A program made the position numbers and the translations under genes. DNA of 64,000 nt from contig NC_133622.1 of the NCBI RefSeq assembly GCF_048593235.1, forward strand, positions 248,748,055 through 248,812,054, given 5' to 3'. The notes under the pieces were generated by a model. That model saw only the letters and a program-made list of their open reading frames with translations. It was not told where the DNA came from and did no database searches. Origin of the DNA: Sminthopsis crassicaudata (Eukaryota). Below are positions 56,276 to 61,700 of the stretch, piece by piece (position 1 is the stretch's first letter; every line of letters begins with the position of its first letter).

Positions 56276-57442
56276 TCAGCTGCCAGCTTCCAGGTCTTCC
56301 ATCTCCACATCCTGGATGACTCCAGCTTTCCTCTTCTTCTGCCGTCTGGGCTGCGCCTCAGTGGTCCTGCCTGGCTTCGGGGGAGCTTCCACTGCAGGAG
56401 GGGGGGAGGAGTTAGTTAGCGGAGTGCCCTCCAGACCCCAATCTTTTTCCTTTCTCTGCTGGAACCCTCCCAAAGCCCCCCCCCCTCACCCTCCATGGCA
56501 GCCTTCTCCTTCTGGGCATGCCTGATCTGCTGCAAAAGTTTCCTCCGCTTCTTCCCAGACAGGGTGATATTGGCTCGGGCACTCGACCTAAAGGAGAGGG
56601 GCAAAGGTCCAGTCTTAGCTCCGAATACCCCAGGGGAAGCGGCTGGGCTTTTCCGGGCATTTACAATTTCCTTGGATGGGCACACTTTAGCGGCCGCTCC
56701 GCAGGGGCTCCCTCCTATCTGCCTCCGTGCCTCCGGACCCTGGCACCGCACCCGGCAGTAACAGCTACTTCATGACTGTTGCTTGAATTCTCACAGAACT
56801 TCCAGATTTCTGGAAGGGGGGGAGGGCAGGATAAGAATGCGACTCTCTAGTCCAAGCAGGATAACGCGGTTGAGTTCATCGGACAGCTCGCTTCTGAGGG
56901 GCGGGGGGGGGGGGGGGGGGGGGGAGTAACAGCAGCATCCGGGCACTTAAGCTGTGGAGACCCCATCAGTGAAGCCCCTTCCAAGACCTGAAACACGCGG
57001 CTCCCTCCGCCCCGCCCTCGCTTTTGGCCCCGCCCCCTTCTGCCTCGGGAGACGGGGCAGAGAGAGGCCGTCGGAGGGGCCCTGGGAAGACTCACGAGCG
57101 CTTCTTGAGATGATGGCGAGTGATAAGCCCCTCGTCCAGCACCGCCCCGACCACCTGGTGCCGCCGCCGCCGCTCCCGTCTCAGCAGCCGGCGCCGCTTG
57201 AACAGCTTCTTTTTCAGCTCCTGGCAAAGGAAGGAACAGGCGGCAGTTAGGGGGGGGGGGGAGTTCGCGCAGCTACCTCCGCGCCCCTCCCCCCCCCCCC
57301 CGGCCGCGTGGATGGCCCTGGTGGGCAGCAGGGCCAGGAGGCCGCCTCGGGCTGGAGGCAGAGGGCAGAGGGTAGGGGCATGGGCGGGGTCCCACGCAGT
57401 CACCGTCCGCGGCCGGTTGATCTTCCCCCCGGGAGCCCCCAT
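56276..57442 (-). CDS. C11orf98: C11orf98 ortholog, small basic protein, 4 exons, 125 aa
   Basis: CDS exons 57442-57404, 57220-57096, 56587-56490, 56391-56276; [24 protein letters not shown]...[18 protein letters not shown]; AATAAA (minus) 55898-55893. Confidence 0.95.
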
Positions 57443-57557
57443 GGTCCAGGCTCAGAGGTTAGCGTCGCGCAGCAGCGGCTGCTTCCGCCGTTCCAAGTGC
57501 CACTCTCCACGCGCCGCGCCCCGCCCCTTCGGGGAAGCCCCTCCCCCAGCAGAGCGG

Positions 57558-57640
57558 CCAATCAGAGGTAAGGGGCGGTGCGACAGCCTGCGTATAAAGC
57601 AGCGCAGGGCGAAAACGCAGTTCCTTTCCCGCCTGAGCCG
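57558..57640 (+). promoter_or_regulatory. CCAAT-GC-TATA promoter with 5'TOP/TCT initiator and ~17-nt first exon of the SNORA57/CSKMT unit (divergent from C11orf98)
   Basis: CCAAT 57558-57562, GGGCGG ~57573, TATAAAG 57593-57599, TC-CTTTCC initiator ~31 nt downstream (C at ~57624), donor CCG/GTAAGT at 57641. Confidence 0.8.
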
Positions 57641-57730
57641 GTAAGTGTCGCCGTCCCGCCTCCTGGGGGGGGGGGGTGCTGCGAGGGCGTCTGACGGAGC
57701 TCCGGGCACTGCCGCGTGCCTGTCCGCGTC

Positions 57731-57882
57731 CTGCCTCCATTTCTTGGCGGGGGCCGGGTGCTCGGTCCCGGCCCCCGTTATGTACGGAGGCAGAGTAAGG
57801 GGACCCTGGTCCCCCCGGCGTCATGTCTTCGGTGCCGGCGGCTCCCCATCCGCCGGTTCTATCCTCACTCGCCGGGACATCG
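57731..57882 (+). ncRNA. SNORA57: Box H/ACA snoRNA, ortholog of SNORA57 (U99)
   Basis: Hairpin 1: CTGCCTCC(57731-38)/GGAGGCAG(57786-93) and GGGGGCCGGG/CCCGGCCCCC. H box AGAGTA 57792-57797. Hairpin 2: CCCGGCG(57814-20)/CGCCGGG(57870-76). ACA 57877-57879 plus 3 nt. Syntenic position matches human SNORA57. 5' end approximate. Confidence 0.88.
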
Positions 57883-57970
57883 CCCTTTTTGCAGGGCGGA
57901 GAAGGGGCCGCGGGATCCGGCCGATTTCCCTCCGCCTTTTTGGTTCTCACCTGTTGTGCTTCTGTTTCAG

Positions 57971-58065
57971 GACCTTGATCGCCGCCGCCAGCGGACATGG
58001 AACGGCCGGACCCTTTCTCTCCCCCTTTTTAACTCGTTCAATAAAGTCCGCTCCCTGAGAAAGTC
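57971..58065 (+). ncRNA. Candidate short terminal exon of a compact snoRNA-host transcript
   Basis: Strong acceptor (TTCTCAC...GTGCTTCTGTTTCAG, AG 57969-70), AATAAA 58040-58045, U/GU-rich downstream element; carries only an 11-codon ORF. Confidence 0.5.
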
Positions 58066-58236
58066 TGCCTCTGACCTTTGTCCTCGTTCTTTCGGCGCAG
58101 GGGGGGGGGAGGGGGAGCGGGAGCCGGGCGTGCGATTGGGCTCCGGTGTTCGTTGGCCGCGGTCTCAGCCCTCCCCTGCACCACCTCGCCGCGCGGGGCG
58201 CCCTTCCACCCGGACTTGACCCTGGAGACCTTCCCG

Positions 58237-59051
58237 ATGGCGCTACTGCACAGGCTTCTCCACGAGGCGACCAGGGCGAAGCACTCCTGGGCCGGTAGGG
58301 ATTTGGGGTGGGGAATGCGGGGGCGAAGGGGGGAGGTGCCCAGCGCACGCCCTTAACCACTGCCCTGTCCCAACCCCGTGCAGGCTCCCTGGCTGGCAGC
58401 TGCCTGTCCGATCGCAGGCTCTGGGACCGGCTCCACGCCCAGGCCTTGCCCGGAAGGCCCCCTACCTTCGACTGGTTTTTTGGCTACGACGAGGTTCAGG
58501 GGCTTCTCTTGCCACTGCTGCAGAGAGGGGCTCCCCAAGGGCCAGCGGCGGCCCCCCTCAGGGTGCTGGACGTGGGCTGTGGGACCTCGGATTTGTGCCC
58601 TGGGCTCTACACCAAATGCCCCCTGCCTCTGCACGTGCTAGGCGTGGACTTTTCTCCAGTGGCTGTGCAGCGCATGAAGCACTTGCTGGAAGGGCACGGA
58701 GACCACCCTGGCCTGCGCCCGGGGCATCCCGATTCCCGGCTGCATTTCCTGCAGGCTGATGCCCGAGACCTGGGCTCGCTCTGTCTTTCCAGGTCCTTCC
58801 AACTGGTGCTGGACAAGGGCACCTGGGATGCGGTGGCCAGAGGAGGCCAGGCTGGGGCGGGGCAGCTGCTGTCTGAGTGTCTGCGGGTGCTGGCCCCACG
58901 GGGCACCCTAGTGCAGTTCTCGGATGAGGACCCCGACGTCCGCGTGCCCTGCCTGGAGCGGGGAGCTGGCAGCAGATCGGTGAAAATACACGAACTGGGG
59001 CCCTTCAAGGGGCTCAGTTATTTTGCTTACTTGGTCCAAGCAGCTCAATAA
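58237..59051 (+). CDS. CSKMT: Citrate synthase lysine methyltransferase (METTL12), 2 coding exons, 241 aa
   Basis: Exons 58237-58294 (MALLHRLLHEATRAKHSWA, presequence-like) and 58384-59051; FDWFFGY, VLDVGCG (motif I), LDKGTWDA, FSDEDPDVR; total 726 nt. Confidence 0.94.
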
Positions 59052-59217
59052 AATCCACCTTCCCCGTTTTATTTGTGTGTCAAGTTTAGGAATGGGGTAG
59101 CCCTTCTGGCTGGGAGTGAGGGTGGGAAGCATGGGGTCTCCCATATATTCTCCTGGGCGGTGCTGTCTCCAGTGGGGGGGGGAGCATGACTCAGGAAACA
59201 AGAGAAGAATCTTACTC

Positions 59218-60042
<825 letters not shown>

Positions 60043-61700
60043 TGTGACGGGTGATGGAGGACTTGCTCCGCTTCAAGATCTCCCCGATTTGCTGTGTCCC
60101 CTCTGTCCCCGGACCCTTTATGCCAGACTCCCACAGAAGGGGGACAGATTTTGCCCCAGTAATCTCCTTTGGGAGCTGGCCCCTTAATCGCATCTGAGGA
60201 AAGGAGGCTGACAAGCAGCAGGGAGATTATGGAACCCCCGAGGGGGGAGGAAAGACTGGAAGAGTTTGGCCCTTGGAGGGGAACAGAAAAAGGTGAAAGC
60301 GATTTTTCCCTGGAACACGTGGCTCAGGATCCTTCTTGTGAGAGCGTTTACCACAAAACTGGGCAGCTCCGAGCTGTTTCCCAGAGCTGGCTGTGGAGGT
60401 CACGGATTCATACTTAAGCCCCCCCAGACCCTTGCACGGATGAGACGTAGCTGTCCGAGACATGCTCAGATGGTCGGATTTGGCCAAATCCCTGTGACTA
60501 AACCAGCTTCCTCACGTACAGACGGTGGCTTTTGGCCCAATATTAGGCAGGTTTCTAGAGCTGGAGGACCCGAAGGACGGGTCCGTTTATTTTGTAGACA
60601 AGCGCCCGGGAGTCACAGGAACGTCACCGAGTGACCCCAGGGCTGCCCGTCCCATCCAGGATAGTTACAATCTCGTTTTACGGCCGAAAAAGCTCATTGG
60701 GCCCAAGCCCCTCATTTGAAATAAGTTACAGGAGGCAGGGGAGGGGGGGAGGGGACAAACGGCCCGTCACCCCTTTTCAGACTCAGTCCGGAGCCCTAGA
60801 GCCTCGAAAACAGCCGCGCGGCCCGGGCCAGCTGGGGGAGAAGCAGGACAACCCAGGCCCAGGGAGAAAGATTTTGCCACCAAATTATTCAGCATCAAAC
60901 CCGGCTGTCACTCTGTCCGCAGCTCACGGGCCTTCCCGTCAGCCTGGGGGGCGGGGGGAGCCCGCCCGCTGCCTCCTCACCCACCACAACTGTCTGTGGC
61001 TCTAGCCCACCACAATCCAGGGCTGTGGCCCTCCTAAGCACCCAGAACTGTTTCATCCGCGCTTACGGTCCTTTTCTCTGTCAAGTCCTGCCCCGTTTGG
61101 TGCTCACTGCACCCTGCACCGGAGGTGGTGCTATTATTATTCCCATTTTAAGAGGAGGAGACAGAGAAGTGAGAATGTGACAGTGACGCTCTCTGGGGGG
61201 GGGGGGGTGCGGACGAGAGAAGCGAGTTAAAGCTTCTGAGAGTACTTCCGGGGCGCCCTAGCGCTTTACAAATATAGTCTCGTTTCTCATCGCCCTAGGG
61301 GTCCCCATAGGGACATCTAGATGACAGGCTGGATTCTCCCGGAGCTGAGGGATTTTTTCAAGCGAAGCTAAGAGCATGCGCACGGCCGGCTCCGCGGGCG
61401 AGCGCAGGTGGGAGGACTCTGGGCTCTCCGCCCCGGGGCGCTATAGCCACGAGCGCTCTTCCTGCCCCAGCTCTGCGCAGTGGGAGGAGGAAGAGAAAAA
61501 CTCTCTAGTCCATTTCACCCCCTCCCGCCCCTCCCCTTTTAAAGTCCTCGCCTTCCGGTCTCGCTCCATCCCGTCTCTATGGCCCCGCATTGGCCTCTCT
61601 AGGCCGGTGTCCCCGCCCGCGGAGGACTTCGTCTCTGTGGCGCGGCCTCTCTAGGCGGCGGAGGGGGCGGGGCTCTGTTCTCCGGTGGGCGGTCGAGGAC

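Follow-up and report, generated by a model that had tools for sequence, protein, structure and literature searches.

The small nucleolar RNA (snoRNA) host gene U17HG and its neighbour RCC1 reportedly give rise to joint transcripts, and RCC1 transcripts are said to have been first regarded as the host of the snoRNA. According to a passage of PMC7601244, which cites Kiss and Filipowicz (1993) and Pelczar and Filipowicz (1998), U17HG (SNHG3) lies upstream of RCC1, does not have the potential to code for protein and belongs to the terminal oligopyrimidine (TOP) gene family. In snoRNA host genes with dual-initiation promoters, YR and YC/TCT start sites are combined, and the snoRNA is thereby uncoupled from the host mRNA (Nepal et al., 2020, PMC6954239; Fafard-Couture et al., 2021, PMC8176728). 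Furthermore, G5AG5 or MAZ-like elements are associated with pausing and termination that depend on the poly(A) signal and that occur in short tandem-gene gaps (PMC8972054). Here, these systems are compared with a stretch of 64,000 nucleotides (nt) from the marsupial Sminthopsis crassicaudata (NC_133622.1, positions 248,748,055 to 248,812,054), hereafter termed the window, in which the H/ACA box snoRNA SNORA57 precedes the protein-coding gene CSKMT. The SNORA57–CSKMT segment represents, in a marsupial, a locus that is already known, and it belongs to an established kind of gene, namely a non-coding TOP-type snoRNA host ahead of a protein-coding gene. All positions given below are those of the window.

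The orthologous human locus, SNORA57/CSKMT (METTL12), was described by Schurch et al. (2014; PMC3983147). All of the human METTL12 models have an intron in the 5′ untranslated region (UTR) that holds SNORA57, with the snoRNA starting about 110 nt after the transcription start. As in the window, the METTL12 3′UTR is very short (the 3′ end lies 13 nt past the stop codon) and LBHD1/C11orf48 runs antisense across the locus (PMC3983147). Human direct RNA sequencing gave a poly(A) peak in the METTL12 5′UTR, described as a ‘snoRNA57 precursor’ (hg19 chr11:62,432,794-62,433,179, 385 nt; PMC3983147). By the published coordinates, this poly(A) end lies 138 nt past SNORA57 and precedes the ATG by 172 nt, a position in agreement with the AATAAA found to be conserved in the present comparison. 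The original prediction was aware of no description of the switch between a short host RNA and CSKMT mRNA. The premature poly(A) site was, however, reported in 2014, where it was treated as an annotation detail without conservation, splice analysis or a regulatory model; the amniote-wide occurrence of a miniature host unit and the reliance of CSKMT RNA on read-through of this unit seem not to have been spelled out before. No paper linking CSKMT and SNORA57 mechanistically was found among those searched, and CSKMT, METTL12 and SNORA57 are unmentioned in the main text of PMC6954239 and PMC8176728.

On balance, we consider it somewhat more likely than not that SNORA57 is hosted by a small non-coding unit conserved across amniotes and that CSKMT RNA is made by read-through from the same promoter. 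The choice would lie between the use of a short terminal exon, with splicing plus cleavage, and read-through, rather than between two splice acceptors, referred to below as acceptors A and B. Like U17HG, the locus has no conserved exon open reading frame (ORF), and it probably shares with U17HG a TOP-type start, an intronic snoRNA and a poly(A) site before a coding gene. Unlike U17HG, the SNORA57 unit is far smaller, with two exons and a predicted mature RNA of ~110 nt. Its end is placed only some 175 nt ahead of the ATG of the next gene, CSKMT, which seems to depend on read-through and not on its own promoter. The resemblance to dual-initiation hosts, as judged here from the sequence and the starts of assembled contigs, would lie in a single promoter from which both a snoRNA and a host mRNA arise and then part ways; the difference is that the uncoupling would occur at the 3′-end choice and not at initiation alone. 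As in the C2/factor B tandem genes (PMC8972054), a G5AG5-type run follows a poly(A) signal, here by ~60 nt, in a very short gap before the next gene; in the present locus no separate downstream promoter is evident, and eutherian loci have U-runs instead. In comparison with the human locus, only the unspliced read-through form was seen here, and acceptor B and a G10AG5 element are lineage features.

Conserved signals of a probable SNORA57 host unit

The window was compared with the orthologous loci of Sarcophilus (L001) and Dromiciops (L002), a eutherian contig (L003), rabbit RNA contigs (L004–L013), and loci of the leatherback turtle (L014), alligator (L015) and the frog Spea (L016). A six-locus set, used for alignment, comprised the window, Sarcophilus, Dromiciops, L003, rabbit and alligator. 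SNORA57 was located at 57734–57882 on the plus strand, where it matched Rfam RF00191 with 158.9 bits (E 2.4e-39; gathering score 40) over model positions 1–149 of 149. The rest of the window gave no further Rfam match above threshold. Orthologues scored 115–172 bits in six other loci, with an identity to the window of 97% in Sarcophilus and 95% in Dromiciops, and in every amniote locus compared the snoRNA was placed between C11orf98 and CSKMT. In Spea bombifrons, no SNORA57 was found within 4 kb upstream of, or inside, CSKMT. The linkage of SNORA57 and CSKMT may have arisen in amniotes, with one amphibian having been checked.

The sequence features on which the original prediction was built were all found at the coordinates it had listed, with the TATA box within one base. 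A common layout, consisting of a TATAAA box, a CTTTYC motif, a donor, the snoRNA, an acceptor and an AATAAA, was shared by the three marsupials, L003 and alligator. In these five loci the CTTTYC motif (CTTTCC, CTTTTC or CTTTTTC) follows the TATAAA by 28–31 nt, the donor lies 20–36 nt past the motif and the acceptor 58–88 nt past the snoRNA; the rabbit RNA contigs have acceptor A and AATAAAG at matching positions. The predicted architecture, a TATA plus TCT-type promoter with a very short first exon and a SNORA57-holding intron, is present and conserved from alligator to mammals.

The promoter occupies a 112-bp core between divergent transcripts. A CCAAT box (57558–57562, plus strand) lies inside this core and is kept in Sarcophilus, Dromiciops and L003. 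The TATAAA box, located by script at 57593–57598 on the plus strand, is invariant in the three marsupials, and L003 and alligator have it at a matching distance from the initiator. A TCT/TOP-like TCCTTTCC is found at 57622–57629, with C57624 31 nt past the T that opens the TATA box. A CA that could act as a canonical start is located at 57618–57619, 5 nt from the TCT motif. Exon 1 (57616–57640, plus strand) measures 17–25 nt, and the assembled contigs, from which start sites are only approximate, begin at 57616 in run X20 and at 57620 in run X5, that is, 4–8 nt upstream of C57624. Starts upstream of the TCT position would fit a dual-initiation promoter, without being proof of one. With respect to the TOP promoter that had been predicted, the motif is present and conserved, and strict TOP initiation is unproven given where the contigs begin. 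A bacterial promoter and terminator scan of the window gave no matches and was judged irrelevant here.

The predicted intron (57641–57970, plus strand) is 330 nt long, opening with GTAAGT and closing with a pyrimidine tract and CAG, and SNORA57 ends 88 nt before its 3′ splice site. Its donor reads CCG followed by GTAAGT, with the exon ending at 57640 and the intron starting at 57641, and both the donor and acceptor A are conserved among the orthologues. Acceptor A, ending in cttctgtttcAG with the AG at 57969–57970, has a tract with 15/20 pyrimidines. It opens the terminal exon A of the host RNA (57971–58062, plus strand; ~90 nt, with the cleavage site predicted), in which an AATAAA is located at 58040–58045 on the plus strand. 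The terminal exon measures about 85–125 nt across the compared loci, and its possession of an AATAAA of its own upstream of the CSKMT ATG, as had been claimed, holds from alligator to mammals. In exon 1 joined to exon A, the sole ORF comprises 11 codons from an ATG at 57997, whose counterpart is GTG in Sarcophilus and CTG in Dromiciops and which is absent from L003 and rabbit. The ORF is not conserved, and the short unit is therefore taken to be non-coding.

Conservation across the loci was concentrated in these signals. From the base composition (A = 11.6%), an AATAAA was expected 0.0017 times over the 354 nt from the snoRNA to the ATG; it was found 141–175 nt past the snoRNA in all six loci of marsupials, eutherians and alligator, and the features thus exceed what chance would give. 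In the six-way alignment, CAG followed by G at acceptor A and AATAAAG formed invariant blocks. Conservation of the AATAAA in related genomes had been named in advance as a test, and in the six loci this invariance answers it in the affirmative. Identity to the window in the 30 nt preceding acceptor A was 90% for Sarcophilus and 71% for Dromiciops, in exon A 84% and 70%, and in the segment of AATAAA plus 20 nt 89% for both. The intron flanking the snoRNA was poorly conserved (49–62% to Sarcophilus and 43–53% to Dromiciops). As judged from these alignments, selection is shown to act on the signals and not on the flanks.

Two further elements follow the poly(A) signal. A U/GU-rich element (58063–58098, plus strand) has 92% identity to Sarcophilus and 67% to Dromiciops, and a MAZ-like G-rich element, G10AG5, is found at 58100–58115 on the plus strand, +60 from the AATAAA. 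A G4+AG4+ run occurs at +59 to +62 after the AATAAA in the window, Sarcophilus, Dromiciops and alligator, and eutherians have U-runs in its place. The G10AG5 element probably assists polyadenylation, pausing or termination. Its G10 run at 58100 had one G fewer in the contigs of three runs, and X5 had one fewer in the G run at 57665; either the homopolymers vary in length or the window contains an assembly error.

CSKMT RNA and its start

CSKMT (58237–59075, plus strand) consists of coding exon 1 at 58237–58294, an intron at 58295–58383 and coding exon 2 at 58384–59051. The protein encoded by exon 2 shares 90% identity with CSKMT of Sarcophilus and 80–86% with that of other marsupials. To observe its RNA, assembled Logan contigs of four runs from four studies were analysed, and three of the studies showed CSKMT. 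No run was on record as RNA, and those used were judged to be RNA by GT..AG joints in CSKMT, CT..AC joints in LBHD1 and an uncovered promoter. The CSKMT intron has GT..AG ends, and its joint (58293>58383) was present in X5, X7 and X20.

The CSKMT contigs extended far upstream of the coding sequence. In X20, one contig ran from 57616 to 58293, joined to 58383–58666, and a second continued to 59075; in X5, contigs covered 57620–58295 and 58383–59254; in X7, a single contig combined 57704–58293 and 58383–59091. The assembled RNA is thus unspliced through the snoRNA, acceptor A and the AATAAA, after which the coding intron is spliced. None of the contigs of the four runs covered 57504–57615, and the RNA is therefore placed as starting at the SNORA57 promoter. 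Contig depth upstream and in the coding sequence was 22.1 and 21.5 in X5 and 10.3 and 9.92 in X20, and this flat profile therefore gave no indication of an added internal start. These results agree with the original prediction in so far as CSKMT RNA appears to derive from the SNORA57 promoter.

No joint or loose end was found at 57971 or 58101 in the four runs, and contigs could hardly reveal such junctions. At k = 31, a junction from an exon 1 of 17–25 nt would give a dead-end branch no longer than ~55 nt. Short dead-end branches of this kind are, as we understand the assembler, clipped, and an RNA of ~110 nt is lost in ordinary libraries. The absent 57640>57971 and 57640>58101 junctions are therefore uninformative and were not counted against splicing.

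The rabbit contigs gave a similar picture. In 6/10 of the CSKMT contigs, the spliced coding sequence was preceded by an unspliced run that extends from SNORA57 to the ATG and includes both acceptor A and the AATAAA. The rabbit contigs begin in or after the snoRNA, and none (0/10) had an exon 1 junction. In five of them (L004, L005, L008, L009 and L013) an Illumina adapter was fused to the contig start or end: 13–22 nt inside SNORA57 in four, and at G plus exon A in L013, which also ends in adapter directly after ATTAAAAAA at the CSKMT stop. The fusions may be real RNA ends or short-insert artefacts. The starts inside SNORA57 were considered as a possible SPA-like, 5′-snoRNA-ended RNA, and this candidate was dropped; the starts vary, are adapter-fused and are explicable by weak 5′ coverage.

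Several points weigh against the host unit with read-through and have to be set beside this evidence. No contig had a 57640>57971 junction or an end near 58060, and the contigs are unable to show them; the tiny RNA in S. crassicaudata is put forward from conservation and the human data. Contig depth is a mean over reads and not a property of single molecules, and the flat depth could hide spliced forms or carry inflation from snoRNA reads. The unspliced 5′UTR contains three upstream ATGs, with upstream ORFs of 92, 51 and 11 codons; the unspliced form would translate CSKMT poorly, and the productive mRNA may be a minor spliced form, either A-spliced read-through or B-spliced. In the turtle, the snoRNA and a strong acceptor are kept and the sole AATAAA lies 967 nt past the snoRNA. 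The remaining points, namely the human gene models, one rabbit contig and the sequence between the poly(A) signal and the CSKMT ATG, also feed two alternative explanations.

In one of these, SNORA57 lies in the first CSKMT intron, a plain 5′UTR intron removed by splicing at acceptor A, with an AATAAA that is seldom used and serves no purpose; the unspliced contigs would then represent pre-mRNA. The RefSeq and Ensembl human models all splice out a 5′UTR intron that holds the snoRNA (PMC3983147). No ATG occurs from the snoRNA to the CSKMT ATG in Sarcophilus, L003 and rabbit, where an A-spliced read-through leader would be clean, and rabbit contig L013 has its start precisely at exon A and extends as far as the CSKMT poly(A) site. 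This explanation is difficult to reconcile with an AATAAAG that is invariant in six loci at the above expectation and is followed by conserved downstream elements, or with the human poly(A) peak measured at the matching place (PMC3983147). In X7 and X20, moreover, the coding intron is spliced in contigs that keep the snoRNA intron, which are therefore not simply nascent RNA. We regard the plain intron as unlikely.

The second alternative involves two tandem genes. The host unit would end at its poly(A) site and G-rich pause, CSKMT would start from its own GC-rich, ATTGG-containing promoter in 58100–58236, and the continuous contigs would be minor read-through or nascent RNA. The G-rich element and the ATTGG at 58135 do suit a separate CSKMT promoter and are typical of short tandem intergenic regions (PMC8972054); the G10AG5 run 60 nt past the AATAAA is conserved in position in marsupials and alligator, and an unspliced 5′UTR with three upstream ATGs resembles a poor mRNA. 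Against this stand an even depth in X5 and X20 all the way from 57620 to the 3′ end of CSKMT, the one contig of X7 that spans 57704–59091, and human models that put the CSKMT start upstream of the snoRNA (PMC3983147). The supposed promoter region is in addition poorly conserved and largely gapped relative to Sarcophilus, and it measures only ~90 nt in rabbit. A separate CSKMT promoter is, in our assessment, improbable, and read-through from the SNORA57 promoter is retained as the preferred explanation.

Acceptor B, the leader and neighbouring transcripts

The original prediction placed the switch at two acceptors, with acceptor B opening an ATG-free leader of the CSKMT mRNA. The CTGAC at 58071–58075 and the AG at 58099–58100 that define acceptor B are present as listed, and in the lineage of the window the U/GU-rich stretch at 58063–58098 can also be read as the branch site and pyrimidine tract of acceptor B. 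A filter requiring at least 15/20 pyrimidines plus YAG was applied to every AG from the snoRNA to the ATG in all loci. Acceptor A passed in every mammal and alligator; acceptor B passed only in the window and Sarcophilus and failed in Dromiciops, both eutherians and alligator. The GC-rich leader behind it (58101–58236, plus strand), in which the ATTGG is located, was the least conserved segment relative to Sarcophilus, with an identity of 32% and 72 gapped columns, and had 61% identity to Dromiciops; the rabbit leader is ~90 nt. The assembled CSKMT RNA was unspliced across this whole region. As a second arm of the switch, acceptor B is not supported by these results, and the smaller claim that exon 1 joined to the B leader has no ATG was borne out by script.

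These results bear directly on the competition that had been proposed, in which one TOP promoter feeds acceptors A and B, CstF and U2AF contend for the U-rich stretch at 58062–58092, and splicing at B gives an ATG-free CSKMT mRNA. In favour of such a competition, the window and Sarcophilus each have two acceptors that pass the strength filter, the U-rich stretch is indeed located between the AATAAA and the AG at 58099–58100, exon 1 plus the B leader has no upstream ATG, and B-spliced junctions would be undetectable in the contigs. It is opposed by the failure of B in Dromiciops, both eutherians and alligator while A and the AATAAA are conserved throughout, and by the low conservation of the leader behind B. 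No joint or loose end occurred at 58101 in the four runs, and the depth upstream of 58101 equals the coding depth. We consider this competition very unlikely; the roles of CstF and U2AF in it, together with the proposed link between pseudouridylation and control of the tricarboxylic acid cycle, are speculation. The choice between the terminal exon and read-through is accordingly the one carried forward.

C11orf98 (DUF5564) is arranged head-to-head with the SNORA57 host promoter. Its exon 1 (57405–57503, minus strand; ATG 57443–57441) is covered in X20 by contigs at 57357–57432 and 57403–57503, stopping at 57503, and the orthologous loci likewise have a DUF5564 gene call upstream, on the minus strand. 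In alligator, an Rfam SNORA2/SNORA34 match of 96 bits was found at 980–1115 of L015 on the minus strand, inside the gene called C11orf98, so that C11orf98 in reptiles may also be a snoRNA host; the marsupial window had no SNORA2/SNORA34 match in Rfam.

On the same strand, an X20 contig from 59225 carries 14 loose letters that match only 57206–57219, where C11orf98 exon 2 has its edge. An LBHD1 exon may therefore be spliced on the minus strand to C11orf98 exon 2, with an intron at roughly 57220–59224 that would enclose C11orf98 exon 1, the divergent promoter, SNORA57 and the entire CSKMT. LBHD1 exons at 59225–59344, 59666–59824 and 59912 to 60200 and beyond were joined in X5 at a depth of 403, ~20x that of CSKMT. 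The possibility that the unspliced CSKMT contigs represent antisense LBHD1 intron RNA was rejected, since their coverage stops sharply at 57616–57620 though the intron reaches 57220; the plus-strand GT..AG joint in the contigs also speaks against this origin.

Some features of the CSKMT gene itself may be added. Its stop codon TAA (59049–59051) lies inside its own AATAAA (59047–59052), contigs end at 59075 and 59091, and the 3′UTR is only ~25 nt; the GCTCAATAAAA at the CSKMT stop and AATAAA also occurs in Sarcophilus and Dromiciops. In X5, the 89-nt coding intron was retained (contig 58266–58412) at a depth of 8, compared with 8.9 for the spliced form. Longer CSKMT isoforms (269–273 amino acids) are annotated in Sarcophilus, wombat and brushtail possum, and the Sarcophilus isoform is called in its locus as a single uninterrupted ORF.

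Proposed mechanism and its meaning

A mechanism can be proposed from these observations. The TATA box and TCT/TOP-type initiator would drive the SNORA57 host from the 112-bp divergent promoter shared with C11orf98, giving an RNA made up of an exon 1 of 17–25 nt, the 330-nt snoRNA intron and a terminal exon of ~90 nt. The terminal exon would be defined jointly by acceptor A, the AATAAA, the U/GU-rich element and the G-rich element. Through such terminal-exon definition, splicing at acceptor A would be coupled to poly(A) cleavage, thereby releasing the intron; SNORA57 would be trimmed from the released intron, and the remaining host RNA would comprise ~110 nt plus its tail. Polymerases from the same promoter that miss the terminal exon would run on into CSKMT. 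In the assembled form of CSKMT, the snoRNA intron is kept, the poly(A) site is read through and the coding exons are spliced normally, and A-spliced read-through forms, like those of the human gene models, are perhaps made too. The signals, their conservation and the unspliced read-through RNA are observations; the tiny RNA in S. crassicaudata, the coupling of splicing with cleavage and the form of CSKMT mRNA that is translated are inferences. It is plausible that poly(A) site use and read-through are alternative outcomes.

A broader form of this model is offered tentatively, as less likely than not. Expression in amniotes of CSKMT, a mitochondrial citrate-synthase methyltransferase, would be gated by the use of a ~90-nt terminal exon from a TOP/dual-initiation promoter, and CSKMT would possess no promoter of its own. 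Its output would then be inverse to the efficiency of snoRNA-host 3′-end formation, and read-through CSKMT RNA would keep the snoRNA in its leader.

TOP snoRNA hosts, polyadenylation at premature sites and read-through from one tandem gene into the next are all known as general principles, and the practical weight of the finding is modest. If the read-through model is true, annotation of the locus would be corrected: SNORA57 is filed in a 5′UTR intron of CSKMT, and conservation points instead to a tiny non-coding gene, separate from CSKMT, as the primary unit. The locus would further provide a compact and deeply conserved case in which 3′-end choice uncouples a snoRNA from its ‘host’ protein. 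A nuclear-encoded mitochondrial enzyme would thereby rely wholly on leakage beyond a snoRNA host's 3′ end.

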